NCBI GenBank assembly: GCA_001643675.2
Contig: LSRY02000025.1
Coordinates: 806,001-870,000, forward strand
Origin: Monocercomonoides exilis PA203
Taxonomy: Eukaryota > Protista > Preaxostyla
DNA: 64,000 bases
Direction of reading: 5' to 3'
In this document: positions 3,792-59,956 of the stretch, piece by piece
How positions within the stretch are numbered: the stretch's first letter is position 1
Layout of the letters: every line of letters begins with the position of its first letter
Position numbers and translations under genes: made by a program
The notes under the pieces: model-generated
The model's database searches: none
Told to the model about the DNA's origin: nothing
What the model saw: only the letters and a program-made list of their open reading frames with translations

Positions 3792-6700
3792 ATGCACTTC
3801 TGTCCATTAAAAACAATTCTGTATTGCATTTCTGTTTTCGAAGTTTTTGTCAAATCCGAACATTCCTTTTTGGAAAATGCTTCAACTAAAAAAATAGATA
3901 CAAATCAATTTGTTAAAGCTCCAAATGTTGAAACGCATATCTTTTCTATTGAAAAAGAAGGCGAACGAGAAACTTTTAATTGTCATAATTGCAATTCTTT
4001 GACCAATTCATTTGTCACCTGTAGATATATAGCATCAAACTCCTCGTTATCACTTTTGAAGCTTGATATTTCTTGGTCAAAGAATTGTCAAATCTTTTTT
4101 GCAAAAAGATGTTCACACATAAACATTTGCACGTGTTCTCTTCAAGAATATTTCAGTTTATCAATCCCATTTGAAAGCCACAAATCACAGCTGTTCTTCA
4201 ACAACTTTTCAATCAAGCAAATCGAATCAAAAAAATACACTCCACCAATTGCACGCATAATTGGAGAAATGTCTTCAATAGAGTTGCATTCTTCAACACT
4301 ACAAAATTTTCTGTTTGAAAAGACTGGGACATTTCTTCTCAATTGTTGCTTCTCTAACGTTGTGAGGAATTCATTTTTCAAAAACATAACGGTCAAATGC
4401 CAACTGAATAATGAAATTTGCACTGATGGTTCTGTCTTTGCTTCGGAAAAAAGTGTTATTGACTGCTGTCAAATTGAATCAACTGAAAATGCTCTTGTTG
4501 GCACAGTGATTTGTGGTATTCAGCAATCAAGGCATCTTCATTGCACAAATACGTCTATAATCGGAAACAAAAATAGCGATGATGTGCATAAAAATCCTGA
4601 ACAAATAATAACCTCTAATTCAGTAAACTTTAACTATTCTGAATGGATCAACTGCACATCCGCAACAAATGGTGGTGCCATTTCCATCACAGGAAGCGAT
4701 AATTCAACACTAAATCTCTCTTTTTGCTTCTTTTTTAACAACCAAGCTCTTCATGGGCGTGGAGGTGCAATTTATACTCTTTCAATTTCCACAATAAACA
4801 TAGATCATTCCATATTTCAAGAATGCAAAGCTCCAGATAACAGCTTTGATGAATCTGGTGGTGGAATATGCATCAAATGTCCTCAATCCACATACTCCGT
4901 TAATAACTGTTCATTTATCTGCTGTTTTTCCGGAAATGATGGTGCTGGACTGAGCATTGACAGTAAAAGTGCAACAATGGGTGGCGATGAATTATTAAAT
5001 AACCTGTTTTGTAATTGTTCGACTTCGCAATTACCTGCATCAACAGGCGGAGGAATTCAAATGTGGGCAATGGCAATTCCTCCAAAAATCAAAAACTGTT
5101 TTTTTCTTAACAATTTCGCTTTCAATGGCGGAGGGGGATTTGCCCTTCAAATTCCAAATCAATATTCTGAAAAAACAGTTTATTTTTGTTTTTTTCACTC
5201 AAATGGTCAAGGTCCAGATGGAACAGGTGGATGCGACATTCTCTTGCAGGATCAACAAATCAACATTATTGATTCAAGTTGTTATTCATCAAGAATTATT
5301 GGACAAAGAGTTGGAAAAAAGTATAACAGTCTCATTGATACTAGTACTTGGCTTCGAAATGATGGAGGAAGAATCAGATTCGTCTCCTCAGCGTTAACCA
5401 AACCAAATGCAAAAGACACATATGCATGCGGAATTAATGAGTCTCATCCGTGTGGCACCATCAGCCATTGCCTCACTCAGCTGATCCCGGATGTTGTGAA
5501 GGATGTCCAGATACTCACAGGAACGATTACAGAAACCAAAAGTGTGGATTGTGGCACAAACTCTTTCACGATATATGGCCAGAGTGGTTTGAGCACAACA
5601 GTGCAGACAGAATTGGAAGCAGCTGGGTTGTCTCTTTTTGCTGTCTCGACAGGCACATTGTCTGTCAGTGACTTTGCCCTTTTACACAGTTCGGCTCATC
5701 CGAATAACCGTGGGTCATGGCTGTTTGAGATAAATGGAGCAGGAGTAATGAGTATCAGCAGTCTGAACGTATCTATTGGAAGTGGACAATCAACAGAAAC
5801 AGCATTCACAACAGAGCTGATCAATGTTCAGAATGGTGTGCTGCAGATGGACAATGTGAACTGGGCAAAGACGATCTCCACAACTTCATTGTTTTCGCTT
5901 TCTTCGACAAATGAAATATCATTGACGCTTTCGGAGTGTGCCTTTGATGGGATTGAGAGAACAAATAGTGAAGCAGCTGTATTGACATTTTCCAATGATA
6001 AGGCAAACATGAATCTGGATTCTTGTTCATTTTCTGGTTGTGGGAGCACGGGCTCAGAGAATGGAGGATCAATGATGTTGTGTGTTGGGGATGCAAATGA
6101 AGTGAATGTGAAAGACGGGTCTTTTAATGGCTGCTATTGCTCGGTGACAAATGGACTCGGAGGAGGAATCCTTCTCCAGCTATTGAATGCAAATCCAAAT
6201 TTCAAAATCTCCTCTTCATTTGGAACGAACACAGCCAAATGGGGAAGAGACATCTTTGTCCTTTCACCAGACCTGGAAGAAACTGCAAGGTCACAAAAGA
6301 TTCAATGCGTAGCAGCCTCTTTGGACTCGTTTGACAAGGTGAGAGGATATGACAATGGAAACAACACTGTGGCCATCCCTCTGTGCATATATCTCCTTCC
6401 CACCCCGGAAGAAATATATGTGAGTAATACTGAGGCATCTGATCATTCTCATTGTGGAATAGTCCAATTCCCCTGTTTGACAATAAAGCACTCTCTCACA
6501 CGTCAAACAGAAACAAAGAAAGTTACTGCGAGTGGAATGATTATGATGGCTGATGAATTGGCTTTTGCCAATCAAAAGCATGAAATCCGAGGAAATGATG
6601 ATGAAAGTGGCTGGACAGTCTCTGATTCGAGTGCGACATCCAATTCAGCGATGTTAACAACAAGCGTTGAAACAGTCTTGTCAAAACTTATCTTCTCTCT

Positions 6701-9700
6701 TCCTTCTTCTTTTTCATCGCATTCCACTTTTATTTCGTCATCTTCTTCAACACTAACCCTATCACATTGCTCTTTAACTCTTCAAGATTCTTCATCAGAA
6801 CTGGTATCCTTATTCTTATCCATTGCCTCGGGAATCCTGACAATTGATTCGTTCTCAGCTTCGTCAATCACTTTGAGCGGAAATCCATTGATCTCATTAT
6901 CAGGAAGCATCACAAAGGCAGAATTAAAAAGCGTTCAACTGAATGCGATCGGAACATCTTTCACATCAGGACTATTTGAAGTGAAGAACAACGCTTCTCT
7001 TCAGGTGTGTGACAGCGTTGTTTCTTCAATTGCTCGATCGGAAGAGCTGGCATCCTCGCGTCTTATCTCCACAACAGATGCAAACAAAATTGTCATTATA
7101 CGCTCTGACATTTCGAACTTTGCTGTGAATAATCAGAACGGGGGAGCGATTGAATGCACACTTGAAAGTGGCTGTTCCTTTGTGTTTGAAGAGGGAACAA
7201 TGAGTTCATGCAAAAGTGAGGGAGGGAATGGAGGGGGATTGTGGGTGCGGGCAAAAAGCGGATCATCCCTCAGGATTGGCAATGTGACGGAAGCGCCTTC
7301 AAACAATGAAAATGAAAATGAAAATGAAAATGAACAGGAGGAAAAAGTGTGCTTCTCTCATTGTGAGGCATCAGCAAATGTTGATGGAGGCAAAGGATTT
7401 GGAGGAGGGGCCTGCTTGTATTTGGATGCTGGAGCATCTGATTTTGTATTGAAGAGCGTGAGATTTGATGGATGTTCAGGAAGGAAAGGGAAAGACTTGT
7501 TTTTGGATGCAAATGATCTGAGGGCTGTAACAAACACGGCAACAATCGGCTTCAATGTTGATGTGAATGAACTTCACAAGTTGAACGGGTTTGAGCGCTC
7601 AACGGCAAATGAAGAATTCGTGATACCACTTGTTGTGTATTTTTGGAACAACTTCACATCTCCTTGCCACGTTGGAGGGCAGAAGGCACATGATTTCAGT
7701 GGGTGTGGATTTGAGCAGGTTCCGTGTTGCACAATTACTCAGGCAGCAGATTTGAGGTTTTCTGGAAAAAACAAGTCGATAAAACTGCATTCGCCATTTT
7801 CATTTGTGGAAGAGCTGATCATGGATATAGATGAATGGAACGTGACTGGAGAAGGAAATATCTCAAGTTATGAGATAGCAGCTGACATTTCTGGTGCTCA
7901 AAAGGAGTATTTGAGATACACTGCCCAACCACCTTTGCTGAGTTGGTGTTTTCTGTTGCTGAAAGAATAGGATCTCACGAAAGCATTTTCCATTGCATTT
8001 CCAGCTCACTGACAATTCAGGATTGTGGGATTATTGCATCAAAAAATAGCTTGGATGTTTCCTTTGTGAAAGCGGAAAGAGGCAAGATTGCAATAAGCAA
8101 TACGTTTGGGAATGGAATCAGATGGCAGACAAGTGCAATCATTGCCAATGGAAGAAATGGAGGAGTCCCTTCAGTTGAAATTGCAGAAAGCCGCTTTTCA
8201 GGAAGTGGGGAGCAAAGCGGATGCTTGATGGAATGCAGAAGCATAAAGAGCTTGAACATCACCAAATGTGAAATGAAGACAATAGAAAGAGTAACTGGAA
8301 ATGGAGGTTGTATTTACATTGACATCAGCAATGATAACGGTGAAGGTGAGAGAGTTGATGTTACCGAATGTGTTTTTGATAGATGCTCTGTTTTGGCTGA
8401 TGAAAGCAGAGGAGGGGCAATGTTTTCTCAGTTGAAAGGAAACATTCAAATGAATGTTATTTCATGCACATTCATAGGATGCACAGCACCAACTGAAGAG
8501 GAGAAATCTGGCTTTGGAGGAGGGATGGCACTGAAGTTGATTGATGATTATTCTTTGTTTGTGATCTCATCTCCTGTTTTTGATTCTGATAAGCCGAATG
8601 TTGCAAGATATGGAAATGACCTGTTTGTCGAATCGCCAAGCCTGACAAAGAGCATCACAAATGCATCCCTTCCGTTTGTATGTAAGAATCTGAATGATAT
8701 TTCCTTGGATTCGATGAGAGGGTTTGATGGGAATGACACAACAAATGCCATTCCGCTGGTGTATTTCTGGATTGCACTTGGATCAGAGATATTTGTTGGA
8801 GGCGAAGGAAAAGATATGGGTGCCTGTGGGTTTTCGGATTGTCCTTGCCTGTCAATCGATTATTCTCTGGATCGATTGTCCGAAGGAAATGAAAGGGATA
8901 TAAACATCATTGGAAAAGGAGTTCTTCAGAAATGTGTTGATGTCAGCGGGGCTGCAATAAAATCAGATAATAGCCTCATTTGCTCCTTGGAGTGTCTCGC
9001 TTCGCTTGAAGGATCAGAGAAAGCAGCAATGAAGATTCAGGGAATTACAAACTTCGAACTGATAAACTTTGTGATGCCATCTTCATTCACTGGTGATGTT
9101 AAAAGTTTGATGCATGTTGGATCATGTGATGCGTTGTTGACTGTGAAGGACTGTTCATTCACAAAAATGGAAGAAAGTGAAGAAGAAATAATCAGCTATG
9201 GGCTGATCAAGGCAGATGGAGGCACAGTTCAATTGGAATTGGTGACAATGCAATCGCTGTCTTTTTCAAAGGATGTGATTTCTGTGTTATCTTCAACGAT
9301 GCTGAACATCAAAAATCTGACGATGAAGAATGTTGATCTGGATGGATCAAGTGGATTGAGCATTTCGAAGGGATCAAAAAGAGGAAAAAATGAAGATGAA
9401 CAAAACATTGTTGTTGAGTGGAGTGTATTCGAAGAAGTCACCCAGAACACGACGGATGACAATCCTGTCATTCGAAATGACAATGATGATGAGCCTTTGA
9501 AAATGGTTATACGAAACACAACGATGAAGAAGTGTGGTGGAACGAGGTGTGGAAAGGGAGGGGCGATGTTTGCCCTGTTGAACGAAGGAGGACACCTTGA
9601 CTGCTTGTTTTGCACGATTTCTGAGTGCTTCTGCTCAACCACAGGAAGAGGTGGGTGGCTGTTTCTGGAATGCACTTCAACAGCTGAGCAGCCTCTGAAG

Positions 9701-12700
9701 TTTGTATTATCCAACATCACATTCCGAGACAACGCTGCGTTCAGAGGGAGAGATGTGTATGCGAGATGCCGCTCAATCGAAAATCAAATTGCAGATGAGC
9801 AATTCTTGCTGGACTTCCGAGCTCCGTTTGTGAAGGATCTAGCAATGTGGGGCTGCACAACAGACTCGTTTGTGGGGGAAGAGGATCTGCTGCTGAGGGT
9901 TGTGAAATACCAGAGCGAGACGATCTTTGTGTCTTCTGCTGCAGACAACCACGAAGACAGCAAGCAATGTGGAGAGTTCGGCAAGCCTTGCGAGTCGCTG
10001 AATGAGGGGGTGCAGCACATCGTTCCGTCTCAATACTCCCAGCTGCTGGTGTCGCACCAGACAGCCATCTGCTCGCCATGCAGCGCAACCAGCGTGAGCA
10101 TCCGCTCGCTCGAGTCCCCTTCCTCTGCGCTCGTCCACCTCGACACCCCCATCCAGCACTGCCCAGCCATCCTCGCAACCTCTGCAAACGTCCGGATCGA
10201 GTGCCTCGACTTCCTCTTCAGCCCATTATTTTCGCACACAGGCAGTGCTGTTGTGTGCCACACCGATGGCCACCTCTCGCTCTCCTTTGTCCAGTTTGCT
10301 TCCTCTGCCACTTCATCAGCCACCTCTCCAGCTGCACACCCGGTGCTCCTCAACTCCTCCCTGCTCGCCATCGAGGGTGGCCACCTGACTGTCGACAACT
10401 GCTCCGTCCTGCACCTCGCGTTTGCTCTCCCGCCTTTCCTCCTCTCCACTGCCAACCGTGTCGCCCTCGCAAACATAAGCCTCCAGCACCTCCAGCTGTC
10501 AGCCAGCGCCTTCGAGTTCCGCCAGTGCCAGAGCGCCTCGGCACACAGCGTGGCAGCCGAACATCTGGTGTTTTCGCAGGGCAGCATCCTCTGCCTCCCT
10601 GCCACTGCCACGGGAGACATCGCCTTTTCCGGCTCGTCTTTCCGCAACTGCACAAACACACGCTCCAGCTCCAGCACCAGCACAAGCACAAGCACCTCCT
10701 TTGGCTCGTCTGTGCTTTCTGCGTCTTCCCCCTCTGCACACATGTCCCTGTCCAACTTCACCTGCTCGCAATGTGGCCCATCCCCTGGCAACGATGCTGA
10801 TGAACCGGCACAGCAGGGGAGCGTTGTGAGTGTGAGCAATGCAGCAGATCTCTCGCTGGCCATGTGTGTGTTTGAGGGAGCACCTTCAGAAACCACTGAA
10901 AGTGCAAATGAAAATGAAAATGGAAACAGAAACGGAAACAGAAACAGAAACAGCGCAGACAGCATCTGCTCGTGGAATGCATCGCTGGTCCATCTGTGCA
11001 ACACAACAGCAGCCATCAGCGATCTCACAGTGGCAAACGCATCTGACGGAGCGCTGTCTGTCTCGGGAGGCACTGTCCGCATGGACGATGCAAAGTTTGT
11101 GGGGAACAGCCCCTCTGCCCGCAGCAGCCCTTCGGCCAGCAGCTATCCGTCTGCCCGCCGGAACATCGCCTGCTCCGATGGGGCGTCGCTGACCCTGGCG
11201 AGCGTGAAAGGGGGAGACGGCGCGAAAGACAACACCTCTCTGTGGATACTGGACAGCGGATGCACGCTTGCCGGCATCCCCCGCCACAGGCTGTCTCCCT
11301 TCTTCATCCCAACACTCCATTCTGCACACGAGGCGGGAAACGAAGCAGATGAACAGAGCGAGGTCACAATCAGATTCCAGGGAGAGCTCCTCTTGCCCTG
11401 CAATCTGTCGTTCCTGCTGGCAACAACCATCGGAACCGAGGAATTGCTGCATCGGTACGAGTTCGATGCAAAAGGGCTTGTCTCGGAAAAGGAGGCCTTT
11501 GGGGAAATACAAGGGAGCATCCTTCGAGAGGCGCCAGCAGAGGCAGAGGTGTCTGTGTGTCTGCTCTTTGGCAATGCTGATGCTCCCTCAGCCACTGAGC
11601 CTTTCATCCTGAAGAACAAGAGCGATGGAAAAGCAAATGGAGACGAAAGAATTGTTGAAGGAGGAAAAGAAGGGAAATCTTATTGGTTGTTAATTGTGAT
11701 CGCTTGTTCAGTTTTCATAATGTTGTTGGCGATAATTGTTGTTTTGGCAGTCAGATGGAGAAAGCAAAAGAGAAGAACAGAAGAACTTGAAGTGATTGTG
11801 AATGATAACATCAGAAAAGATCCGAAGGCATTTGAGATGGTGACAATGGAAATGTCACCTGAGGAGCAGTGGAGAAGAGCCGAGAGAGAGGCAGAGAAGA
11901 AGAATGAAGAGAGAATCAAGAAAAGAGCATATGATACGAATATGCAGCATTCAGAGTCATCAGAGCATCTTCTATCTGAGAGTGGTTCCACTGAATACAT
12001 TCTGGGAAGAGACTCAGACAAGATTCCTGAATGGGCATTGGAGAAGGATGAAGAGGAAGAGACAAGAAAGAGATCTCCTTCTCCATCCATTTCATCCACT
12101 TCAACCACAGACACTTCAGACACTGAATCCACATTTGTTCGAGGGGGAAGATTTGTGCCCAACCACTTCGTCAATGTCGAATCTGGTGGATGCGATGAGC
12201 TGCTCTTCTCCGCATGAGAAGCTGATTGTGGATTTGAGGGATTCTCTGTTCATGCTGTTGCATGGAAGAAACGAGAAGAAGGAGATGGCAATTGGGAGCC
12301 TTCAACAAAGAGAGCAAACAGCTGCCCAAATCCTGTTCTGGGTGGCGAATGGGGCACTTCACTCGTTTGAAGAAATGGAAAATCCTCTTCAGTCATTATC
12401 CAATCTGAGTCCGCACATTGTTCTATTTTCAGAACACATGGTCATCTGCATTGTGATTCACTCTGACTTATTGTCTAATGATTCAGATTCTTCATCTATC
12501 TCTTCATCAACAGCTGTGACTTCTGCCAGTGATGATGACGATGAAGATTCTCTTCCCTCATCAGCATTTGAGGATGAAGATGACTTCAGGAAAGAGTGCT
12601 TGAGGTGGAAGGCACCAGAACTGCTGATCAACAAGAAGATGGGAGCAGCAAAGGAGTCAGTCTCGTTCTCGATTGGGATGATGCTGTGGGAGTGCTTGAC

Positions 12701-13034
12701 TCTGCAGATCCCGTTTGGGGAGTATGAGGCAGAGGTGGCAGGGCAGAAGATTGCGAACGGAGAGCGGCCAGCACTCGAGGCAGTGCAGTGCTCTTCCTTC
12801 TTTGGCCTTGTGAAGAGCTGTGTGTCCCAGTCGCCTGGTGCACGCCCCTCCCTTGTCCAGCTCAAAAGAGAGTTCATCGGGCGCTTCCCGCCTGGCGCAG
12901 CTGTCCTCACCCTCACAGACGCAGTCGACCTCGAAGACTCGACCGACGGACACAGGCAAGGCACAACATCCTTGGCCTTCTCAGCCAGCAGCACTGCCAA
13001 CGAAGCCCAGCCAACGGTCAACACCAAAATTTGA
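3792..13034 (+). CDS. Giant single-pass receptor-like protein (beta-helix-like ectodomain, TM, TKL-like pseudokinase), ~3,080 aa if two homopolymer frameshifts are repaired; may be a pseudogene
   Basis: ORFs 3792-7970, 7943-12217 and 11904-13034 join into a protein collinear with the intact paralog at 52025-59956. Frameshifts lie at AAAA 7900-7903 and GGGGG 12143-12147 (paralog has GGGG). GGAI/GGG repeats, five CG-x4/5-PC motifs, TM ~11681-11752, then LRWKAPE / SFSIGMMLWECLT / IPF / GERP / ARPS kinase C-lobe motifs. Confidence 0.85.
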
Positions 13035-13428
13035 GAATGAAAAAGAAATGGGGAAAAAAAAGTGTATTTGAAAGAAGAGAATTTCAATTGCGCTGGTGAT
13101 CATCGCCAGTGATTTTTGTTTTGTGTTTGTTTTTTCCCCCTAAAGTTTGCTAATTTGTTTGAGCAAAGCACATATTTTGCTCCTCTTGGCCTCATTTTCG
13201 CAGAACAGGCGATTCTCAACGACAGAGTTGCACTGCCATGTGCTTCTGCATCCTTGCTCAGGCTTGCGACAGCCAAGGGCTTTCCTCAAAGCCCTCCGGC
13301 AACCAATAATCGATTGTCTGAGCCAGGCCTTGCCAATTCGCATAACATCACCCTCGGCCTTCTTGGCCAAAGAATGGCACAAAAGCCAAACACAAAAGGG
13401 TATTCAATATGCATGAGGTTGGAGGCAT
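13035..13428 (+). repeat. Conserved 3' flank co-duplicated with the receptor gene (copy 1)
   Basis: Aligns closely with 59957-60346 up to gaggttggaggc, then diverges. Confidence 0.9.
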
Positions 13429-14115
13429 CATAAAAAATATTATTTCTTTCCTTTGTTTTGCTTTTCCATTTTTCGTTTCACTGCTTCAACAATAAAAGAT
13501 TGCAGCCACATCACTCTGAAGATACAATAATTATTGGTTTTTTTTTATTATTTTATTTTCCTTCTGTTTTTATTTTTCCTGCAACCAAAGAAATTCCTTT
13601 TCCATATTCCCTTGCTGATGCTCCTCCGATGCCTCTGGCTTCGATCCTATCTCCTGCATTGCGCTGGATTGCGCCAATTTTAGCGAAGCCAAAGCCATCT
13701 GAATATGCTGTCTTTTGTGGTGTCTTGCTGTGCCTGTTGCAACTCCCTTGCTTCCCCAAAGCAGCACAACGCCCATTCCATCTGTTCTCCTTGCTGGACA
13801 AAAGCAATCTCTTCCAGCCACTCATTCGAGTTGAGTGTGCACATGGCCCGCACGATTCGTTCCCTCTTCCCCGATGCTTTCTCTTTAAAAATCATCATAT
13901 TTGATTATGTGGATTATTTCTAATCTTTTAAAAAATTTATTCATTTTCATATGATTTAAAAAATTGAAATTATAGTCTATTTTTTAATTAAAAAAGGAAT
14001 AATCAAGCCAATAAAACAAATATTAGAACTTAAAGTTTGAATAAAACAAATAAAAACGAAAATTTAAAACACATCTATCACAATGGTAAAATAAGCAAAG
14101 CATATTTACATAATA

Positions 14116-21678: not shown

Positions 21679-21709
<31 letters not shown>

Positions 21710-42424: not shown

Positions 42425-43378
42425 TTAAAAAAACGCTCGAAAAGAAGAAGTTGTTGAAATTGAAGAGGGCGAAGTCGAAGGTGAATGAAAAGTGGCGGGA
42501 GAAGCAAAAAGAGAAGAGGCTCCTTTTGAATTCCTCGAGGAGTTCTTGAATGAGGAGCTTCTTTCCAAAACACTTCCCGAAGTTGAGCTACCAATCGAAA
42601 TGATACAACCTCCAGACAGCTTCACTCCATCAGCAGATATTCCATTGTGTGCAACGCTTCCACAGTTGCCAATCTCAAATACATTGGTTGTTGCTTCAAT
42701 CTGTTCCAGTTTCACATTTATAATATTTATCTCATCTCCATTTAACAGAAACGAAGACTTCTTGAATGAAAGGAACGATACTGAGCAGTTGTCAACATGA
42801 AGAATTCCATTTTCGATGCTCAACAATGTTGAATTGAGAACAACAGATTCAATGTTTTCTGATTCCCCAACCGGAGAAAAATAAACAGATGAAAGGGAAA
42901 GTTGTCCACTTGTTTCATGAATAATAGAACTGCCCAAATACGTAAACAACTGACCAAAGTTGAATTTCAATCTTTCAATACGAACTTTTTCTGAGGTTGT
43001 GAAAAGACTTCCCTCTTTACCAACAATTGTTGAGTTCAGATACACCAAAGCAGCTGAGGGAATTTCCAATGAGTGAATGCTAACATTCTGCACGCTGCAT
43101 TCTCTGTTGATGATTGTTTCCTCTGATATCAACATCTGTGAGTATAGAGATGGAATAATGTGTTGAATTCCAACATTCAGCGATTGGCAAGGAACACTGA
43201 ACTCCCCACATTGCTTGCTATCTCCATGATTATCTGCAACAGAAGAAACAAATATCGTCTCGCTCTGGTTTTTCACAACACTCAACAAAAGATCTTCTTC
43301 CCCCACAAACAAATCTGTTGAACATCCCCACATTGCCAGCTCCAAAACAAACAGTGCTTTGAAATATGCAGCAAACAT
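42425..43378 (-). pseudogene. Orphan fragment (one ectodomain module) of the receptor-pseudokinase family
   Basis: YFKALFVLELAMWGCSTDLFVGEEDLLLSVVKNQSETIFVSSVADNHGDSKQCGEFSVPCQSL aligns with DFRAPFVKDLAMWGCTTDSFVGEEDLLLRVVKYQSETIFVSSAADNHEDSKQCGEFGKPCESL (9812-10000; 56732-56920). No signal peptide, TM or kinase part. Confidence 0.85.
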
Positions 43379-46920: not shown

Positions 46921-48490
46921 TTAATGATGAATTAAATAATCGTTGAGATCATTTGATAGCCTCCAAATACCAGCAAAATAAAAATTTGATCGATAGAAGC
47001 TGATAACAATATCTTCATATCCTTCTTCTTCCATCTTCTCACGCAGCTTTCGATACAGCATCATTTTCTGCTTTGCCTTTTCACTTTCTTCCTTCGCCTT
47101 TCCATTCAGCCAGCTCCAGGCAAACCAAACAAACGAAGACAAGCTATTTTTCTTTTCCATTTTTCTGCTCAATATTCGAGAAAGCTTATAAAAAACTCTT
47201 CTGCCGAAAGTTAAAAGTTCATCATTAATTGTTGGCTGAAGCATTTCCTCCAAAATGAAATCGATAGCCTCTTCACATGGCAAATAATCCTCAGATTCTG
47301 CTTTTTTCAAAATGATATTATCCAAAAACAAATTGCTATTTTCATAGACTTTTCTGTGATTGCACTTCGCTGCTCTGCACAGATCTATGATGCATCTTGT
47401 CAATCTGACATATTCCTCATTCTGTATTTTGCCTAATCTACCAAAGACATCCAAAGCATCGAGCCATCTCTCCAAAATGATTCTTTCTTTCATTTCTTTG
47501 TCTTCTTTTCTCTTCCAATCCACACATTCTTTCAGAGCTTCCATTTCTCTTGCAGCTTCCCTCACAAAATGCAGCTCATTCACGATCACTTTTTTTAAAG
47601 TTTGATCTTCGTTAAATCTTTCAATCAAAAATTCCCAAGCCGATTGATAGGCAAGTCTTGTCAAGTTGTGATGTTCTTGATGACATTGAATAATCTCTGT
47701 AATCTTATTTAAATATAGCCTTTGTTTAACTTCCTTATGATGATGATAATAATAAAAATAAGAAAGAAGAAATGATACCAAAAATGAAACAGAAGTGAGC
47801 ACACAAAATCGCTATAAATGTTTCTCAAAGCCAACAAAGCCATTTCCACTTCTTTTTGTGTCTCTTCGTCTTCCTCTTTTTTCAATGCAACATCCAGAAG
47901 GCATCTCACACAAATACGAAATATTTTAGGCAAATAGTTGTAACTGAGTGAAAGATAGCATTCACAAAGATCAACCAGCAGATGCTCGTTCTTTTCTTCG
48001 TTTTTCTTTTCTTCTTCAATTATCATCTTTTCAATTCTGCTACTCAGCATGCCAAAATAAAAAGTATTGCTTCCCACATGTTTGGAGTGAGTGTAACATC
48101 CAAAATGCTTCATCAACACGGATACCTTACCAATAGATAGTTTCTTTTCATTTATCATTTTGCAAATTGCTCCAATCGGATTTGTTAATAAAATTTTTCT
48201 TGATTCTTCTTCATTCGTTTCATAAAGCATTTCATTCATCTCATCTATTTTCTGTTTTTGCCCTTCCTCATCGCAATATTCAAGTTCATGAAGCAATTCT
48301 TTAAAATAATAAAAATTACGAGAAATAGCAAGTTTGTTAAATATAAAAGAAACAACAAACTTGTGAACTTTTCTGTAAGATCTGATTTGAATTCTTCATA
48401 AACGCTTTCATCATTATCTTCTTCTTCCTCTTCCTTTTCTTCGTATTCCTTGTCTTCTTCAATGCAGTTAACTGGACTTATTCTGCTCAT
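46921..48490 (-). CDS. Lineage-specific multigene-family helical protein, ~478 aa (3 exons)
   Basis: Exons 48490-48361, 48298-47805 and 47733-46921 splice in frame (introns 62 and 71 nt). Contains EEKKNEEKNEHLLVDLCECY, ETQKEVEMALLAL, LTRLAYQSAWEFL and KMEEEGYED motifs, which I recall from repetitive Monocercomonoides hypothetical proteins. Confidence 0.75.
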
Positions 48491-51700: not shown

Positions 51701-51800
51701 TGAAAAAGGAATTTTGAAGAAAGTGATCGAAGAGCAAAGGAGAACATTTTATTTGCAAAGAGATATGCCCATATAAGATTATTGAAAGTTTACTCATTTT
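48800..51800. pseudogene. Patchwork of decayed coding-like fragments, no recognisable family
   Basis: GC content above the intergenic level, short stop-ridden protein-like frames on both strands, and an acidic G/E-rich remnant on the minus strand at 50640-50930. Confidence 0.3.
50757..50837. repeat. 9-bp tandem repeat (TTCTCCTTC)n, encoding GEE repeats on the minus strand
   Basis: About eight consecutive tcttctcct units. Confidence 0.9.
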
Positions 51801-52024
51801 TGATGAAAATTTTCACATTTGACATTTTCATTTGCTTTTTTCTTCAATTGAAAAGAAGGAATCTATTAGCATCATTGTTCAAATGATTTTAATGATTCAG
51901 CAATATTCATAAACCAAACATTCTTTGTTTAATGTTCTGATATTTTAGCGGTTTATTGAAAAGAATAATTATGGATCGTGCGTATAATAGATATTTTTTT
52001 CAAAAAGACATAATATTCCTTGTG

Positions 52025-55000
52025 ATGTGGGTGCATTTGTCTTTTTTGGCATGCTTGTTTCTTGTTAACATTTTTGAGGCATGGGGTGCCACACATATTC
52101 CTTCGCTAAAAAATCCAGTTGCAAGCACAGATTTACTTTTTGATAATTTCCCTGTTTATTCGAATCAAGACGGTCTAAAAGATGTATATTTTCTTACAAA
52201 AAACACCAATATAAATACGATCGAGTCAAATGTTTCATTAGCGTTGAAAGGATGGCAGAATGGTGCATCGACTTCAATTAATTCATTTTTTGGATTTTGC
52301 AATTCTACAATTGGATTGAAAAGTGTAACTCTTGAACACGCATCTTCACCGTTTGCTCTAATAAAAGAAAAGTCATGTGTCACACTGGATTCGTGTCTTT
52401 TTCAACAAAAGCTGGAATCTCCGTTTGATTTGCAAAGTGGGACAATCTGCTTCACAAACATGACTTTGATCCCCCAAACAAATGTTAACCCCTCCAGTCT
52501 CATATTTTCATCGGATTATTCAAATACTGCTATTTTGAGGGATTCCATTCTTTCGGATCTGGCTGTTTCGTCATCAAACTATTTTCTATTATCTGGAAAG
52601 GGCAAAAGCGAACAGATCAATGACTGTGTCTTCGAAAACGTGTCTGTGAAATCTGACAAGAACAGTGATTTTCAAATGGAGCATTCATGCCTGTTGAGTT
52701 TAATGGAAAATGCACTCATTTATTCATGTGTAAATGTCTTTGAAGGAGGGATCTCGAGTGGTTCGCACTCTTCACAGGAATTTATCTGCAAAAACACAAC
52801 GATAAGCAACGGGAAAAGAGAAATGAATGCTCTTGAGAAAAAAGGGCAAATGAATTTAACAAATAGCCAATCATTTTCGTTGTGCGAATGGGAAGATTGC
52901 ACAGCACCACAAGGGGGAGCTCTTTTTGTGTATAACAATGAAGATGCAATTCTCACAGTTGAAAATTGTTCTTTCACAAAATGCAATGCTTCTTCCACAA
53001 GAGGCGGGGGAATATATGCGTTGAAAATTGCTGAATGTTCTGTGCGAAATTCCATATTCAAGAACTGTTCTTGTGAAGCTACAACAAATTATGGAGGAGG
53101 AGGCATTCAGTTTGAAAGTATTTATGTTCAATCAATAGTTGAAGATTGTTTGTTTCAAAAATGTTCTTCTGGAAACGATGGAGGAGCAATTGATCTTCGC
53201 CCAACGATGACAAAAAAACAGAAAAATTGCATTGTCAATTCATTATTTGTATTTTGTTATGCCAACAGTTCCGTGGATGGAAGTAGTGGAGCAATTGAGC
53301 ATTGGAATCCAACGGACAAAGTGGTAATTTCGAATTGTCTCTTTTGTCATTGTCATTCAATGTGTGGAGGAGGGGCTGTCTGCCAAATGACAAACGAAAA
53401 TAATAATGGCATCTTGTTTTATTACTGCTTTTTTCACAATAACACGTGCGAAAAAGGAGGAAACGATGTTGTTCTTCAAGACTCAACATTGAACAACATT
53501 GATCAAAGCTGCTATTCAACAACACAAACAGAAAATAGAGTGAGTTCAAATTCCAATTCAATTGAAGATAAAAGCGAATGGCTTCGAAATGATGGAGGAA
53601 GAATCAGATATGTCTCCTCAGTGTTGACCAAACCAAATGCAAAAGACACATATGCATGCGGAATTAATGAGTCTCATCCATGTGGCACCATCAGCCATTG
53701 CCTCACTCAGCTGATCCCGGATGTTGCGAAGGATATCCAGATACTCGCAGGAACGATCACAGAGACCAAAAGTGTGGATTGTGATGCCAACACTTTCACA
53801 ATATATGGCCAGAGTGGTTTGAGCACAATAGTGCAGACAGAATTGGAAACAGCTGGGTTGCCTCTTTTTGCTGTCTCGACAGGCACATTGTCTGTCAATG
53901 ATCTTTCCCTTGTGCATGACTTTATCCATCCCAATAATCAAGCTTCAAGGCTATTTGAGATTTCTGGAGCAGGAGAGATGCATGTGAGCAGACTGAACAT
54001 TTCAACGGGAAGTGGACAATCAACAGAAACAGCATTTTCGACAGAGCTGATCAATGTCCAGAATGGTATGCTGCAGGTGGACAATGTGAACTGGGCAAAG
54101 ACGATCTCCACAACTTCATTGTTTTCGCTTTCTTCTGCAAATGAAATTTCATTGACACTTTCAGAATGCACCTTTGATGGGATTGAGAGAACAAACAGTG
54201 GAGCAGCTGTAATCTCGTTTTCCAACAACAAGGCAAACATTAAGCTGAATTCATGTTCATTTATGGGATGTGGAAGCAGAACATCAGCTGATGGAGGATC
54301 GATGATGCTATGTGCAGGAAATGGAAATGAAGTGAAGGTGAATGGCGGATCTTTCGATGGATGCTTTTGTTCGGCATCCAATGGTCTTGGGGGTGGAATT
54401 CTTCTTCGATTATCGACTGGAAGTCCAAATATCCTGATCTCCTCTTCATTTGGAACGAACACAGCCAAATGGGGAAGTGACATCTTTATCCTTTCACCAG
54501 ACCTGGAAGAAACTGCAAGGTCACAAAAGATTTCATGCGTGACAGGTTCAATGGATTCTGTTGACAAGGTTAGAGGATACGACAACGGAAATACGAGTGT
54601 GGCCATTCCTCTGTGCATCTATCTCCTTCCCACCCCAGAAGAAATATATGTGAGCAACTTCGAGGCATCTGATCACTCACATTGTGGAATAGTCCAATTC
54701 CCCTGTTTGACAATAAAGTACTCTCTCACACGTCAAACAGAAACAAAGAAAGTTGCTGTGAGTGGAATGATTATGATGGCTGATGAACTGACTTTTGCCA
54801 ATCAGAAGCATGAAATCCGAGGAAATGATGATGAAAGTGGCTGGACAGTCTCTGATTCGAGTGCAACATCCAATTCAGCGATGATAACAATAAATGCGGA
54901 AACAGTATTATCGATACTTCTCTTCTCTCTTCCTTCTTCTTTTTCATCACATTCCACTTTTGTTTCATCATCTTCTTCAACACTGACCCTATCACATTGT

Positions 55001-58000
55001 TCTTTAACTCTTCAAGATTCTTCATCAGAACTGGTATCCTTATTCTTATCCATTGCCTCGGGAATCCTGACAATTGATTCGTTCTCAGCTTCATCAATCA
55101 CTTTGAGAGGAAATCCGTTGATCTCTTTGTCTGGAAGTGGTTCAAAGGCAGAGTTGATGGGCAATCAGTTGTTGAGCATGACTGAATGCAATTTCACAAA
55201 AATAAGAAGAACAGCTGGAAGTGGAGGCTGCGTGAGCATTGACAACAGCGATGATGAAGATTCAAATTCAGAAATAAATATTGAAGAATGTGATTTTGAT
55301 GGATGCGCTGTGCTTGATGATGGAAGCAGAGGAGGGGCAATGTTTTCTCAGTTGAAAGGGAATACTCAATTGAATATTATTTCATGCACATTCGCAGGAT
55401 GCACTGCACCAACTGAAGAGGAGAAATCTGGCTTTGGAGGAGGGATGGCACTGAAGTTGATTGATGATTATTCTTTGTTTGTGATCTCTTCACCTGTTTT
55501 TTGTTCAGATAAACCAAATATTGCAAAATACGGAAATGACCTGTTTGTTGAATCGCCAAGCCTGACAAAGAGCATCACAAACACCTCCCTTCCGTTTGTA
55601 TGTAAGAATCTGAATGATATTTCCTTAAATTCTATGATGGGTTTCGATGGGAATGATAAAGAAAATGCCATCCCGCTGGTGTATTTCTGGATTGCACTTG
55701 GATCAGAGATATTTGTTGGAGGTGAAGGAAAAGATATGGGTGCCTGTGGGTTTTCGGATTGTCCTTGCCTGTCAATCGATTATTCTCTGGATCGATTGCC
55801 TGAGGGAAACGAAAGGAATATAAACATCATTGGAAAAGGAGTTCTTCAGAAATGTGTGGATCTCAGCGGGGCTGCAATAAAATCAGATAATAGCCTCATT
55901 TGCTCCTTGGAATGTCTCGCTTCGCTTGAAGGATCAGAGAAAGCAGCAATGAAGATTCAGGGAATTACAAACTTCGAACTGATAAACTTTGTGATGCCAT
56001 CTTCATTCACTTGTGATGTTAAAAGTTTGATAAATGTTGGATCAAGTGATGCGTTGTTGACTGTGAAGGACTGTTCATTCACAAAAATGGAAGAAAGCAG
56101 AGAAGAAATAATCAGCTATGGGCTGATTAAAGCAGATGGAGGCACAGTTCAATTGGAATTGGTGGCAATACAATCGCTGTCTTTTTCAAAGGATGTGATT
56201 TCTGTGTTATCTTCAACGATTCTGAACATCAAAAATCTGACGATGAGGAATATTGATCTGGATGGAGCAAGCGGATTGAGCATTTCAAAGATTTCAAGAA
56301 GAGGAAAAAATGAAATTGAACAAGATGTTGTCATTGAGTGGAGTGTATTCGAAGAAGTCACCCAGAACACAACTGCTGATATTTCTGTCATTCGAAATGA
56401 CAATGATGTTGAGCCATTGAAAATGGTGATACGAAACACAACGATGAAGAGATGTGGGGGAACGAGGTGCGGAAAGGGAGGGGCAATATTTGCCCTGTTG
56501 AACGAAGGAGGAAAGTTTGACTGCTCATTTTGCACGATTTCTGAGTGCTTCTGCTCAACCACAGGAAGAGGTGGCTGGCTGTTTCTGGAATGCACCTCGA
56601 CAGCTGAACAGCCTCTGAAGTTTGTGCTGTCGAATATCACATTCAAGGATAACTCAGCGTTCAGAGGGAGAGACGTGTATGTGAGATGCCACTCACTCGA
56701 AACTCAAATTGCAGATGAACAGTTCTTGTTGGATTTCAGAGCGCCGTTTGTGAAGGATCTAGCAATGTGGGGCTGCACAACCGACTCGTTTGTGGGGGAA
56801 GAGGATCTGCTGCTGAGGGTTGTGAAATACCAGAGCGAGACGATCTTTGTGTCTTCTGCTGCAGACAACCACGAGGACAGCAAGCAATGTGGAGAGTTCG
56901 ACAAGCCTTGCGAGTCGCTGAACGAGGGGGTGCAGCACATCGTTCCGTCTCAATACTCCCAGCTGCTGGTGTCGCACCAGACAGCCATCTGCGCGCCATG
57001 CAGCGCAACCAGCGTGAGCATCCGCTCGCTCGAGTCCCCGTCCTCTGCGCTTGTCCGTCTCGACACCCCCATCCAGCACTGCCCAGCCATCCTCGCAACC
57101 TCTGCAAACGTCCGGATCGAGTGCCTCGACTTCCTCTTCAGCCAATCCTTTTCGCACACAGGCAGTGCTGTTGTGTGCCACACCGATGGCCACCTCTCGC
57201 TCTCCTTTGTCCAGTTTGCTTCCTCTTCCCCTTCATCAGCCACCTCGCCAGCTGCACACCCGGTGCTCCTCAACTCCTCCCTGCTCGCCATCGAGGGTGG
57301 CCACCTGACTGTCGACAACTGCTCCGTCCTGCACCTCGCGTTCGCTCTCCCGCCTTTCCTCCTCTCCGCTGCCAACCGTGTCGCCCTCGCAAACATAAAC
57401 CTCCAGCACCTCCAGCTGTCAGCCAGCGCCTTCGAGTTCCGCCAGTGCCAGAGCGCCTCGGCACACAGCGTGGCAGCCGAGCATCTGGTGTTTTCGCAGG
57501 GCAGCATCCTCTGCCTCCCCGCCACTGCCACCTCCACAGGAGACATTGCCTTTTCCGGCTCGTCTTTCCGCAACTGCACAAACACACGCTCCAGCTCCAG
57601 CACCAGCACCAGCACAAGCACAAGCACCTCCTTTGGCTCGTCTGTGCTTTCTGCGTCTTCCCCCTCTGCGCACATAGCCCTGTCCAACTTCACCTGCTCG
57701 CAATGTGGCCCATCCTCTGACAACGATGCACGTGAACCTGCACAGCAGGGGAGCGTTGTGAGTGTGAGCAATGCAGCTGATCTCTCGCTGGCCATGTGTG
57801 TGTTTGAGGGAGCACGTTCAGAAACAGCTGCAAGTGCAAATGAGAATGGAAATGGAAACAACGCAGACAGCATCTGCTCATGGAATGCATCGCTGGTCCA
57901 TCTGTGCAACACAACAGCAGCCATCAGCGATCTCACAGTGGCAAACGCATCGGATGGAGCGCTGTCTGTCTCGGGAGGCACTGTCCGCATGGACGATGCA

Positions 58001-59956
58001 AAGTTTGTGGGCAACAGCCCCTCTGCCCGCAGCAGCCCTTCGGCCAGCAGCTATCCGTCTGCCCGCCGGAACATCGCCTGCTCCGATGGGGCGTCGCTGA
58101 CGCTGGCGAGCTTGAAAGGGGGAGACGGCGCGAAAGACAACACCTCTCTGTGGATACTGGACAGCGGATGCACGCTTGCCGGCATCCCCCGCCACAGGCT
58201 GTCTCCCTTCTTCATCCCAACACTCCATTCCGCCCACGAGGCGGGAAACGAAGCAGAAGCAATGAGCGAGGTCACAATCAGATTCCAGGGAGAGCTCCTC
58301 TTGCCGTGCAATCTGTCGTTCCGGCTGGCAACAACCATCGGAACAGAGGAATTGCTGCATCGGTACGAGTTCGATGCAAAAGGGCTTGTCTCGGAAAAGG
58401 AGGCCTTTGGGGAAATACAAGGGAGCATCCTTCGAGAGGCGCCAGCAGAGGCAGAGGTGTCTGTGTGTCTGCTCTTTGGCAATGCTGATGCTCCCTCGGC
58501 CACTGAGTCTTTCATCCTGAAGAACAGAAGTGCACCCAAGGCAAATGGAGATGAAAGAATTGTTGAAGGAGGAAAGAAAGAAAAATCAATATGGCCGATT
58601 ATTGTTATCATTGTGTGCATAATATGCATTATACTGCTTGTAGTCATTGTTGTTCTGGCTGTTCGTTGGAGGAAGGCAAGGAATGAGAACAAAGATCTAA
58701 GAGAGATTGTGAATGACACGGTGAAGAAAGATCCGAAGCTGATTGAGATGGTAACAATGGAAATGTCACCTGAGGAGCAGTGGAGGAGAGCTGAGAGAGA
58801 GGCAGAGAAGAAGAATGAAGAGAGGATCAAGAAAAGAGCATATGATACGAATATGCAACATTCAGAATCGTCGGAGTATCTTTTGGCTGAGAGTGGCTCC
58901 ACTGAATACATTCTGGGAAGAGACTCAGATAAGATTCCTGAATATGCATTGAAGAAAATAATTGAGGAGGGAGAAGAAGAAGAGACAAGAAAGCGAACTC
59001 CTTCACCTTCTATTTCATCCACTTCAACCACAGACACTTCGGACACTGAATCCACATTTGTTCGAGGGGAAGATTTGTGCCCGACAACCTCATCCATGTC
59101 GAATCTGGTGGATGCAATAGCATGCTCTTCTCCTCATGAGAAGCTGATTGTGGATTTGAGGGATTCATTGTTCATGCTGCTTCATGGAAGAAATGAGAAG
59201 AAGGAGATGGAAATTGGGAGCCTTCAACAAAGGGAGCAAACAGCTGCTCAAATCCTGTTCTGGGTGGCGAATGGGGCACTTCACTCGTTTGAAGAAATGG
59301 AAAATCCACTCTCTTCACTTGCCAATCTGAGTCCTCACATTGTGCTGTTTTCAGAACACATGGTCATCTGCATTGTGATGCACTCTGACTTATTGTCTAA
59401 TGATTCTGATTCATCGTCCGTCTCATCATCGACTGTTGCAACTTCTGCCAGTGATGATGACGATGAAGATTCTCTTCCTTCATCAGCGTTTGAGGATAAG
59501 GATGACTTCAGGAAAGAGTGTCTGAGGTGGAAGGCGCCTGAGCTGCTGATCAACAAGAAGATGGGAGCAGCAAAGGAGTCAGTCTCGTTCTCTATTGGGA
59601 TGATGCTGTGGGAGTGCCTGACGCTGCAGATCCCGTTTGGGGAGTATGAGGCAGAGGTGGCTGGGCAGAAGATTGCGAACGGAGAGCGGCCAGCACTCGA
59701 GGCAGTGCAGTGCTCTTCCTTCTTTGTTCTGGTGAAGAGCTGTGTGTCCCAGTCGCCTGGTGCACGCCCCTCCCTTGTCCAGCTCAAAAGAGAGTTCATT
59801 GGGCGCTTCCCGCCTGGCGCAGCTGTCCTCACCCTCACAGACGCAGTCGACCTCGAAGACTCGACCGGTGGGCGCAGGCAAGGCACAACATCCTTTGCCT
59901 TCTCAGCCGGCAGCACTGCCAACGAAGCCCAGCCAACGGTCAACACCAAAATTTGA
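52025..59956 (+). CDS. Giant single-pass receptor-like protein with TKL-like pseudokinase, intact paralog, ~2,643 aa
   Basis: Uninterrupted ORF. Likely ATG at 52025 gives the signal-like MWVHLSFLACLFLVNIFEAWG. GGAL/GGGI/GGAI repeats, four CG-x4/5-PC motifs (~53657, 54682, 55745, 56888), TM ~58589-58663, then RWKAPE / SFSIGMMLWECLT / GERP / ARPS. Confidence 0.92.
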   Translation: MWVHLSFLACLFLVNIFEAWGATHIPSLKNPVASTDLLFDNFPVYSNQDGLKDVYFLTKNTNINTIESNVSLALKGWQNGASTSINSFFGFCNSTIGLKSVTLEHASSPFALIKEKSCVTLDSCLFQQKLESPFDLQSGTICFTNMTLIPQTNVNPSSLIFSSDYSNTAILRDSILSDLAVSSSNYFLLSGKGKSEQINDCVFENVSVKSDKNSDFQMEHSCLLSLMENALIYSCVNVFEGGISSGSHSSQEFICKNTTISNGKREMNALEKKGQMNLTNSQSFSLCEWEDCTAPQGGALFVYNNEDAILTVENCSFTKCNASSTRGGGIYALKIAECSVRNSIFKNCSCEATTNYGGGGIQFESIYVQSIVEDCLFQKCSSGNDGGAIDLRPTMTKKQKNCIVNSLFVFCYANSSVDGSSGAIEHWNPTDKVVISNCLFCHCHSMCGGGAVCQMTNENNNGILFYYCFFHNNTCEKGGNDVVLQDSTLNNIDQSCYSTTQTENRVSSNSNSIEDKSEWLRNDGGRIRYVSSVLTKPNAKDTYACGINESHPCGTISHCLTQLIPDVAKDIQILAGTITETKSVDCDANTFTIYGQSGLSTIVQTELETAGLPLFAVSTGTLSVNDLSLVHDFIHPNNQASRLFEISGAGEMHVSRLNISTGSGQSTETAFSTELINVQNGMLQVDNVNWAKTISTTSLFSLSSANEISLTLSECTFDGIERTNSGAAVISFSNNKANIKLNSCSFMGCGSRTSADGGSMMLCAGNGNEVKVNGGSFDGCFCSASNGLGGGILLRLSTGSPNILISSSFGTNTAKWGSDIFILSPDLEETARSQKISCVTGSMDSVDKVRGYDNGNTSVAIPLCIYLLPTPEEIYVSNFEASDHSHCGIVQFPCLTIKYSLTRQTETKKVAVSGMIMMADELTFANQKHEIRGNDDESGWTVSDSSATSNSAMITINAETVLSILLFSLPSSFSSHSTFVSSSSSTLTLSHCSLTLQDSSSELVSLFLSIASGILTIDSFSASSITLRGNPLISLSGSGSKAELMGNQLLSMTECNFTKIRRTAGSGGCVSIDNSDDEDSNSEINIEECDFDGCAVLDDGSRGGAMFSQLKGNTQLNIISCTFAGCTAPTEEEKSGFGGGMALKLIDDYSLFVISSPVFCSDKPNIAKYGNDLFVESPSLTKSITNTSLPFVCKNLNDISLNSMMGFDGNDKENAIPLVYFWIALGSEIFVGGEGKDMGACGFSDCPCLSIDYSLDRLPEGNERNINIIGKGVLQKCVDLSGAAIKSDNSLICSLECLASLEGSEKAAMKIQGITNFELINFVMPSSFTCDVKSLINVGSSDALLTVKDCSFTKMEESREEIISYGLIKADGGTVQLELVAIQSLSFSKDVISVLSSTILNIKNLTMRNIDLDGASGLSISKISRRGKNEIEQDVVIEWSVFEEVTQNTTADISVIRNDNDVEPLKMVIRNTTMKRCGGTRCGKGGAIFALLNEGGKFDCSFCTISECFCSTTGRGGWLFLECTSTAEQPLKFVLSNITFKDNSAFRGRDVYVRCHSLETQIADEQFLLDFRAPFVKDLAMWGCTTDSFVGEEDLLLRVVKYQSETIFVSSAADNHEDSKQCGEFDKPCESLNEGVQHIVPSQYSQLLVSHQTAICAPCSATSVSIRSLESPSSALVRLDTPIQHCPAILATSANVRIECLDFLFSQSFSHTGSAVVCHTDGHLSLSFVQFASSSPSSATSPAAHPVLLNSSLLAIEGGHLTVDNCSVLHLAFALPPFLLSAANRVALANINLQHLQLSASAFEFRQCQSASAHSVAAEHLVFSQGSILCLPATATSTGDIAFSGSSFRNCTNTRSSSSTSTSTSTSTSFGSSVLSASSPSAHIALSNFTCSQCGPSSDNDAREPAQQGSVVSVSNAADLSLAMCVFEGARSETAASANENGNGNNADSICSWNASLVHLCNTTAAISDLTVANASDGALSVSGGTVRMDDAKFVGNSPSARSSPSASSYPSARRNIACSDGASLTLASLKGGDGAKDNTSLWILDSGCTLAGIPRHRLSPFFIPTLHSAHEAGNEAEAMSEVTIRFQGELLLPCNLSFRLATTIGTEELLHRYEFDAKGLVSEKEAFGEIQGSILREAPAEAEVSVCLLFGNADAPSATESFILKNRSAPKANGDERIVEGGKKEKSIWPIIVIIVCIICIILLVVIVVLAVRWRKARNENKDLREIVNDTVKKDPKLIEMVTMEMSPEEQWRRAEREAEKKNEERIKKRAYDTNMQHSESSEYLLAESGSTEYILGRDSDKIPEYALKKIIEEGEEEETRKRTPSPSISSTSTTDTSDTESTFVRGEDLCPTTSSMSNLVDAIACSSPHEKLIVDLRDSLFMLLHGRNEKKEMEIGSLQQREQTAAQILFWVANGALHSFEEMENPLSSLANLSPHIVLFSEHMVICIVMHSDLLSNDSDSSSVSSSTVATSASDDDDEDSLPSSAFEDKDDFRKECLRWKAPELLINKKMGAAKESVSFSIGMMLWECLTLQIPFGEYEAEVAGQKIANGERPALEAVQCSSFFVLVKSCVSQSPGARPSLVQLKREFIGRFPPGAAVLTLTDAVDLEDSTGGRRQGTTSFAFSAGSTANEAQPTVNTKI

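Follow-up and report, generated by a model that had tools for sequence, protein, structure and literature searches.

Results and discussion

Two paralogous genes at the locus

The window analysed here is a stretch of 64,000 nucleotides from contig LSRY02000025.1 of the Monocercomonoides exilis PA203 genome (C20:806001-870000; assembly total 82.3 Mb in 101 contigs), with AT-rich spacers (24-30% GC) and long open reading frames (ORFs) that are GC-richer. It contains two paralogous genes on the plus strand: paralog A (3792-13034), which the assembly splits into three overlapping ORFs, and paralog B, a single ORF (51971-59956) of 2,661 codons from the first ATG. An original prediction, made from the sequence alone, had described the pair as mosaic receptor-pseudokinases with variable tips on a constant stalk, and had proposed that they belong to a recombination-driven system for diversifying surface receptors. 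Each encoded protein is a type I membrane protein consisting of a signal peptide, a beta-helix tip, four to five further beta-helix modules, one membrane span and a tail. The features of the two genes are as follows (window coordinates).

3792..5348, plus: signal peptide of A and beta-helix domain of its tip (519 codons), with a tip class that no other gene in the genome has; continuous ORF, best genomic relatives 36-44%
5349..5402, plus: A tip/stalk junction, WLRNDGG and the next 11 codons; A/B and A/L001 switch at 5349, A/L003 at 5403
5403..13921, plus: inverted-repeat arm common to A and paralog L003 (C20:794670-803186, minus); all stalk modules, membrane span, tail and 887 nt of 3' flank
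6907..8366, plus: extra (fifth) stalk module of A, missing in B (blastn); 60-65% to P0013 and P0022
7895..7899, plus: A-run at the first frame break of A; L003 has one A more, and RNA-library contigs agree
11681..11752, plus: A transmembrane segment, a hydrophobic run directly before RWRK
12139..12143, plus: G-run at the second frame break of A; L003 has one G fewer and is in frame
12588..12872, plus: A kinase C-lobe remnant (PF07714 positions 164-257)
51971..53578, plus: B signal peptide and tip beta-helix domain; ORF, AlphaFold 2 (AF2) confidence (pLDDT) 80-95 over residues ~105-540, Foldseek parallel beta-helix
53579..53599, plus: B WLRNDGG junction codons, where the confidently modelled tip domain ends (blastn, AF2)
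53579..58582, plus: B stalk, four beta-helix modules (CG..PC motifs at residues 563, 905, 1259 and 1640)
58598..58663, plus: B transmembrane segment, a single span (residues 2210-2231)
58664..59953, plus: B cytoplasmic tail, consisting of a juxtamembrane part of helices, a disordered stretch rich in acidic residues and Ser, and a dead kinase C-lobe (PF07714 at 59501-59794)

In a blastn comparison, A and B displayed no nucleotide match over the first ~1.55 kb, and the encoded tips share only ~28% protein identity, with the anchors SGNDG, CFFH, LQD and SCYS found in the translations of both, just as had been claimed of tips that share little else. The abrupt switch to near nucleotide identity that had been placed at 5349 and 53579 was likewise recovered: a 30-mer quoted in the original prediction, which opens with the WLRNDGG codons, is identical at the two positions, and from there 5349-6907 matches 53579-55137 at 88% and 8366-13426 matches 55286-60346 at 92%. 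Between these blocks lies the extra fifth module of A, 1.46 kb in length and absent from B, so that A has five CG..PC module starts and B four; the same module occurs in the long-form paralogs P0013 and P0022. Within the matching blocks, 60-nt windows with less than 80% identity fall at ~5650-5770, 5980-6220, 10874-10990, 11624-11830 and 12011-12100, the fourth of which corresponds to the membrane span and the juxtamembrane part. Two of the three divergent patches named beforehand (~5680-5780 and ~11665-11835) are thus real, while the third (~8240-8405) is the end of A's extra module. Homology also continues past the stop codon, for ~390 nt between A and B and for 887 nt between A and both L003 and L002. 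The picture drawn from the two genes needs amendment in two further respects: A is broken at two homopolymer runs, and the sharp contrast between tip and stalk is confined to A and L001, the tip of the B-like paralogs being only moderately more divergent than the stalk.

The family and its annotation

The largest gene family of M. exilis, which has been published as protein tyrosine kinases of the TKL group, includes both A and B. The genome papers that describe it (Karnkowska 2019, PMC6759080; Treitli 2021, PMC8767320) count 332 tyrosine kinases, 320 of them TKL, and report that the kinase-family genes overlap "unclassified repeats" (PMC8767320). The annotated proteins and the Pfam signature found here agree with both accounts. 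Outside Streblomastix, all 85 of the 85 eukaryotic database relatives of the tip are MONOS_ proteins, most of which carry PF07714; in the databases they are mostly named "uncharacterized protein", and some "putative Protein tyrosine and serine/threonine kinase". A search with one stalk segment gave at least 83 scored paralogs (5,557 first-look candidates), with ORFs mostly of 2,500-2,650 codons, and at least eight family genes lie at ~490-1,280 kb of C20. Three proteins of Streblomastix strix share this modular organisation of the ectodomain (21-28% identity), down to the CG..PC starts, which indicates that the architecture is at least oxymonad-wide. The comparisons below draw on 20 loci, a further 8 loci from a search for relatives of A's tip, and 43 full-length database proteins.

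The tips are under-annotated in the public proteome, where many models cut off the outermost domain. The public model of B (2,198 aa) begins at codon 464 of the open frame, omitting window positions 51971-53360, so that the signal peptide and the larger part of the tip are missing from it; in several further models of the family the start lies at codons 218-267. The part of the B ORF upstream of the annotated start contains the signal peptide and family-invariant residues, and its ratio of nonsynonymous to synonymous divergence (dN/dS) is 0.2-0.4.

Beta-helix ectodomain

The N-terminus of B is hydrophobic and the protein has a single membrane span. The tips carry five to six G[GA][AG][ILVMF] motifs each, spaced 28-35 residues apart, and the stalk modules are each introduced by a CG..PC..I motif; the last stalk module (~residues 1620-2170 of B) is GC-rich and Ser/Ala-rich, and deeply different classes of it exist. 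An AF2 model of B residues 20-900, built from an alignment of 26 paralogs, displayed a confident all-beta coil domain with short strands in triplets over the tip, followed by a low-confidence linker that begins right after WLRNDGG and by a second coil domain (pLDDT 60-78). Foldseek matched the model to right-handed parallel beta-helices, with PL6 alginate lyases (E 2e-5, probability 0.98), AlgE4 epimerase, antigen 43 (Ag43) and phage tailspikes among the matches; the TM-scores were low (0.13-0.21) because the query holds two domains. The predicted structure of the tip thereby agrees with the earlier reading of the GGA repeats as a beta-helix, and places the ectodomain in the pectin-lyase-like fold.

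The likeness to Pmp adhesins that had been drawn from these repeats holds for the tetrapeptides themselves, which are present, and not for membership of the Pfam family: Chlam_PMP (PF02415) reached 10.3-14.8 bits in tips and one stalk module, below its cut-off of 20.6, and Pfam searches with ectodomain pieces gave nothing above threshold. No autotransporter was matched in the Pfam scan; the protein has instead one helical membrane span and a cytoplasmic tail. In an Atlas feature search, clusters for DUF1565, Chlam_PMP and Beta_helix adjoin the family's own Preaxostyla cluster.

Pseudokinase tail

The tail (~430 residues) belongs to the kinase superfamily, with a PF07714 score of 32-36 bits against a cut-off of 23.1 that covers only profile positions 161-257 of 258, and with relatives in the PDB that are the C-lobes of ILK (the best), DLK, RYK and TAK1. 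In an alignment of 30 tails, SLANLSPH stands at the place of HRDLKxxN and MHS at the place of DFG in 27, the remaining three (class II) having neither the LAN nor the MHS motif, while the APE motif and the subdomain XI arginine are invariant. HRD and DFG were not found in any of the 30 tails; of the motifs that mark an active kinase (Gly-rich loop, VAIK lysine, HRD aspartate and DFG aspartate) the tail has none, and AlphaFold predicted one helix and the C-lobe helices with no beta-rich N-lobe. Judged by its motifs, the tail is thus predicted to be a catalytically dead remnant of a kinase C-lobe, and the term "receptor-pseudokinase" used in the original prediction is correct. Most likely, the protein is a surface binding protein or receptor whose tail serves as a scaffold and not as an enzyme.

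A second, shorter tail class, ~23% identical to the common one, was found in L009, L020 and P0057; it keeps RWKAPE and the C-lobe helices and rides on ectodomains of different clades. Tails are otherwise ~80% identical whatever the ectodomain, and their identity is uncorrelated with that of the ectodomain (Spearman ~0).

Recombination and chimeric genes

One trace of recombination is the inverted repeat of ~8.5 kb formed by A and its head-to-head neighbour L003. From 5403 onwards the two copies show four differences over 7.3 kb (three homopolymer indels and one substitution), corresponding to stalks that are 99.95% identical, and the identity continues at 99% to 13921, 887 nt past the stop codon. 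The tips of A and L003 are only 29% identical, that of L003 resembling the tip of L002. A's own tip has no close relative in the genome, and the stalks of the genes with the best matches to it (36-44%) are 67-76% identical to the A stalk. The two arms have different flanks, and the end point at 13921 is common to L003 and L002. Homology beyond the stop codons covers 13035-13921 and 59957-60346; given the end point that L003 and L002 have in common, the duplicated or converted unit includes the 3' untranslated region and flank.

Other genes are composite as well. The nearest neighbour of B changes along the gene from L004/L008 (residues 1-290) to L002 (388-535) and then to L001/A/L002. In L001, a stalk of subfamily I (92%) bears a tip of subfamily II (70-74%), of a class present in eight other genes, and the change from one to the other falls inside WL(P/R)N|GGR; further class switches were found in P0058 at ~830-860 and in P0050 at ~320-370. 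The last stalk module (~1620-2170) is 96-99% identical among six C20 genes (L004, L001, L003, A, B and L002) that lie at ~490-895 kb (~400 kb), belongs to a class missing in the 14 other sequenced paralogs, and shares ~50% identity with the remaining genes, L006 and L008 of C20 among them. This pattern suggests regional homogenisation.

Maximum-likelihood trees of six gene segments disagree, and in approximately unbiased (AU) tests each segment rejected the tree of every other segment (log-likelihood differences 130-1,886, p <= 0.003); congruent trees along the whole gene, named beforehand as the outcome that would speak against a mosaic, were thus not observed. In a GENECONV-like permutation test, which is inflated in the class-structured residues 1620-2170 with their dense polymorphic sites, 80 of 190 pairs had an over-long identical run (p <= 0.002) where 0.4 were expected, and 13 pairs exceeded the global 95% limit. 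A clean example is the 210-nt identical tract in A/L008, against a background of 60% match at polymorphic sites. The block-wise mosaic and its attribution to gene conversion were therefore upheld.

The notion of exchangeable tips on a homogenised stalk fared less uniformly. Tips have been swapped between subfamilies at WLRNDGG in L001 and A, but across the family tip and stalk identities are correlated (Spearman 0.77), so most genes are not tip chimeras. The 43 full-length proteins divide into deep subfamilies between which tips and stalks are both ~35-40% identical; a stalk constant throughout the family is ruled out by the ~40% identity of subfamily I and II stalks.

Breakpoints and selection

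Junctions between classes lie mostly at or near module borders, namely at residues 531-556 (A, L001 and A/L003), 830-860, 1620-1650 and 2170-2240. Breakpoints clustering at WLRNDGG had been named in the original prediction as a finding that would support its model. The joins of A, L001 and A/L003 do all fall within ~20 codons of that motif, but the others are distributed along the gene, and painting with a copying model revealed small switches everywhere and no dominant peak at residue 536 (with its light switch penalty the painting is noisy where donors are equally distant, and it was used only for the absence of a dominant peak).

Selection along the gene was as follows, dS being the synonymous divergence.

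N-terminal half of tip: dN/dS 0.38
C-terminal half of tip: dN/dS 0.33
Stalk: dN/dS 0.24-0.25
Last module: dN/dS 0.31
Tail: dN/dS 0.18
Tip helix, 15-codon windows: dN/dS median 0.24, maximum 0.73
Pre-helix residues 41-70: dN/dS about 1
Stalk modules 606-1620: dS 0.36-0.78
Tip 350-490: dN/dS 0.10-0.24, dS 1.3-2.1
Tail: dS 0.9-2

At the level of segments, dN/dS is 0.1-0.4 everywhere but in residues 41-70, and the windows gave no signal of diversifying selection, the tip helix remaining below 1 throughout. Positive selection as the cause of a hypervariable tip is accordingly rejected at the level of windows, and the dN/dS estimates for tip versus stalk that had been proposed as a check lie below 1 for both. 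The low dS of the stalk relative to tip and tail indicates that the stalk is partly homogenised at the DNA level. Homogenisation of the tail at the DNA level is ruled out by its dS of 1-2, which shows that the tail is conserved by constraint on the protein; of the homogenised stalk and tail that had been envisaged, only the stalk part thus stands, in part and within subfamilies. To judge from these divergences, the tip classes are old lineages kept apart.

Integrity and expression of paralog A

Both frame breaks of A (7899 and 12143), as well as the break of L003 (A-equivalent 10006), are one-base homopolymer differences between copies that are otherwise identical. Such differences are most likely nanopore assembly errors, which makes A probably an intact gene of ~3,080 codons. 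At 7899, every RNA-library contig in four runs carries the extra A and has the in-frame length, and the break in this A-run is probably an assembly error. The tip ORF of A is intact and keeps all family-invariant residues. A's unique tip (4307-5077, low depth) and the extra module are both matched exactly by contigs of the RNA libraries; the runs are contigs of four libraries labelled "synthetic metagenome", and A and L003 are inseparable in them downstream of 5403. In a search for an independent protein from the 454 assembly that crosses the A junction, the only model to do so, P0090 (MONOS_17641), proved to derive from the same nanopore assembly and to span the frameshift with an artificial intron.

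Other features of the window

One further piece of the family lies between A and B:

42491..43375, minus: solitary family fragment, a 317-codon ORF, 48% to B residues 1585-1884, where the last stalk module begins

The fragment is of another module class and has no tip, stalk or tail around it. Also between the two genes are a PfkB-family carbohydrate kinase gene (32983-34203, plus; E 6e-40) and an ORF with a weak match to DUF1759 (46921-47802, minus; retroelement Gag-like). A single ORF of 4,736 codons (14116-28326, minus) encodes a giant, mostly low-complexity protein with 22% serine and runs of His, Ser and Pro, none of whose thirds has a Pfam match.

Origin of the mosaic

We consider it probable (roughly 0.85) that A and B are beta-helix pseudokinase receptors whose mosaic structure results from ectopic recombination between paralogs, by module shuffling and gene conversion. 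Such homologous recombination, acting over evolutionary time, is shown in three forms. The first are short conversion tracts, 130-360 nt in length; the second, conversion or duplication over long stretches, gave the A/L003 repeat; the third are crossovers at or near module borders, by which whole modules (tip, extra module, last stalk module and tail) are re-assorted. The WLRNDGG linker is one such border, a homology island between unalignable tips, at which the deep swaps of A and L001 are joined. Within subfamilies the stalk modules are partly homogenised (synonymous divergence ~0.5), and under purifying selection an old synonymous divergence (1-2) persists in the last stalk module, in the tail and in the C-terminal half of the tip. 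No dedicated mechanism is needed to account for the shared junction if a domain linker forms such an island: a tract that begins in the stalk has to end where the tips cease to be homologous, and the joins that survive are those that keep the reading frame and the domains. In its evolution the family resembles other multigene surface families, with birth-and-death, gene conversion on a local scale and shuffling of modules.

Several points weigh against this reading, besides the inflation of the permutation test mentioned above. The 20 loci and 43 full-length proteins analysed represent a family of several hundred and were picked by similarity to B, so that chimeras and breakpoints can be given rough frequencies only. 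The A junction is bridged by no read or contig (depth 0 at 5192-5391), and its chimeric join consequently rests on one nanopore assembly; the RNA-library contigs are also without coverage of the second break at 12143. As the RNA runs are "synthetic metagenome" contigs, expression is weakly shown. What is said here of ligand, location in the cell and tail function is inference.

A programmed diversification system, akin to antigenic variation, in which the expressed receptor is exchanged or remade at high frequency, would treat WLRNDGG as a dedicated recombination site and silent gene fragments as donors, with one or a few genes active per cell. The mosaic structure and the tip swaps at one junction would fit such a system, as would the gut habitat, the solitary fragment at 42491-43375 as a possible donor, and the very recent long conversion with one substitution over 7.3 kb. 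We nevertheless regard it as very improbable, since the tip helix has no window with dN/dS above 0.73, breakpoints occur all over the gene, most genes show co-variation of tip and stalk, and the RNA libraries contain contigs for A's own tip together with contigs for many variants of the stalk. Furthermore, no expression site, dedicated repeat or nuclease was seen, and M. exilis is regarded as a commensal (PMC6759080). The recombination-driven diversification "system" of the original prediction is accordingly not supported by the tip-helix dN/dS, the spread of breakpoints or the co-variation of tip and stalk. Equally little credence is given to the narrower idea that WLRNDGG is a functional recombination joint which re-assorts tips onto stalks at appreciable frequency in growing populations; if true, it would amount to somatic or population-level receptor diversification in a free-swimming gut commensal, of which the A/L003 event would be a snapshot.

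Whether recombination is needed at all can also be asked, as purifying selection is stronger on stalk and tail than on the N-terminal 100 residues, and blocks of identity might reflect nothing but uneven constraint beneath a faster-evolving tip. Such an account is scarcely credible in view of A and L003, where a single substitution in 7.3 kb stands beside tips that are 29% identical, of segment trees that reject each other, of a synonymous divergence that varies 3- to 4-fold along the gene in the same set of paralogs, and of homology that reaches into the non-coding 3' flank. It is likewise highly improbable that the junctions and the A/L003 near-identity stem from mis-joined or over-polished nanopore contigs. 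The three A/L003 homopolymer indels do resemble nanopore errors, the stretch 5192-5391 is bridged by no contig, and the family genes overlap unclassified repeats (PMC8767320); the junctions, however, are in frame and at a domain linker, the independent gene L001 has the same kind of junction with a tip class known from eight other genes, contigs of the RNA libraries match both A's unique tip and the extra module specific to A/L003 exactly, and the repeat arms have different flanks and a defined end at 13921 that is common to L002. Somewhat less remote, though still unlikely, is the idea that A is a decaying pseudogene with two real frameshifts, a by-product of duplication. The assembly does cut A into three ORFs, and the public model needs artificial introns to bridge them, but both breaks are one-base homopolymer differences from a copy that is in frame there, all RNA-library contigs have the in-frame length at 7899, and the tip ORF is intact with all family-invariant residues.

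Relation to known systems and significance

The block mosaics, local clusters of near-identical genes and gene fragments found here also occur in the trypanosome VSG, Plasmodium var and Giardia VSP families. In those systems expression is mutually exclusive, switching is rapid and selection is diversifying; in M. exilis, the window-level dN/dS argues against diversifying selection. The best solved relatives of the tail are pseudokinases of the ILK and RYK type, dead scaffolds of the TKL and TK groups, which keep a complete two-lobed fold, whereas in the M. exilis tail only the C-lobe is recognisable.

The family works like other expanded protist surface families, one of them being the EhTMK family of Entamoeba histolytica (PMC2880585, PMC2211552), a large protist family of single-pass proteins with variable ectodomains and kinase-like tails, some of them inactive. 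EhTMK genes likewise include near-identical and truncated copies, and roles in sensing or phagocytosis have been proposed for them. They differ in having ectodomains of Cys-rich CXXC repeats in place of beta-helices and in that many keep a full kinase domain, and they have no sequence kinship with the present family beyond the kinase fold. The chlamydial Pmp and the Trichomonas Pmp-like/BspA proteins (PF02415; PMC6701047) resemble the ectodomain in their GGA(I/L/V) repeats, F..N/F..C spacing and parallel beta-helix, and the latter are expanded surface families in a mucosal metamonad, as is the case in M. exilis. Unlike Pmp, the M. exilis proteins are multi-modular (2,200 residues), are fused to a pseudokinase tail and have no autotransporter barrel.

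The family itself is already known, but only as a count of "kinases". It is the same as the published kinase family in its database names, PF07714 match, hundreds of copies and overlap with unclassified repeats; in the published account, however, its members are counted as kinases and the ectodomain goes unmentioned, whereas here they emerge as mosaic genes that encode a chain of beta-helices and a dead C-lobe tail. A literature search on Monocercomonoides found no paper on the ectodomain, the dead tail or the mosaicism of the family.

The results provide no evidence for a new diversification machinery and constitute a useful re-annotation, not a new mechanism. They offer a natural example of module-level shuffling and gene conversion in a protist receptor family. 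The largest family of the first eukaryote known to be without a mitochondrion has been listed as "tyrosine kinases", yet every member examined encodes a giant beta-helix protein with a dead tail. The family is thus expected to bind and scaffold rather than to phosphorylate, and the kinome count of M. exilis is corrected.

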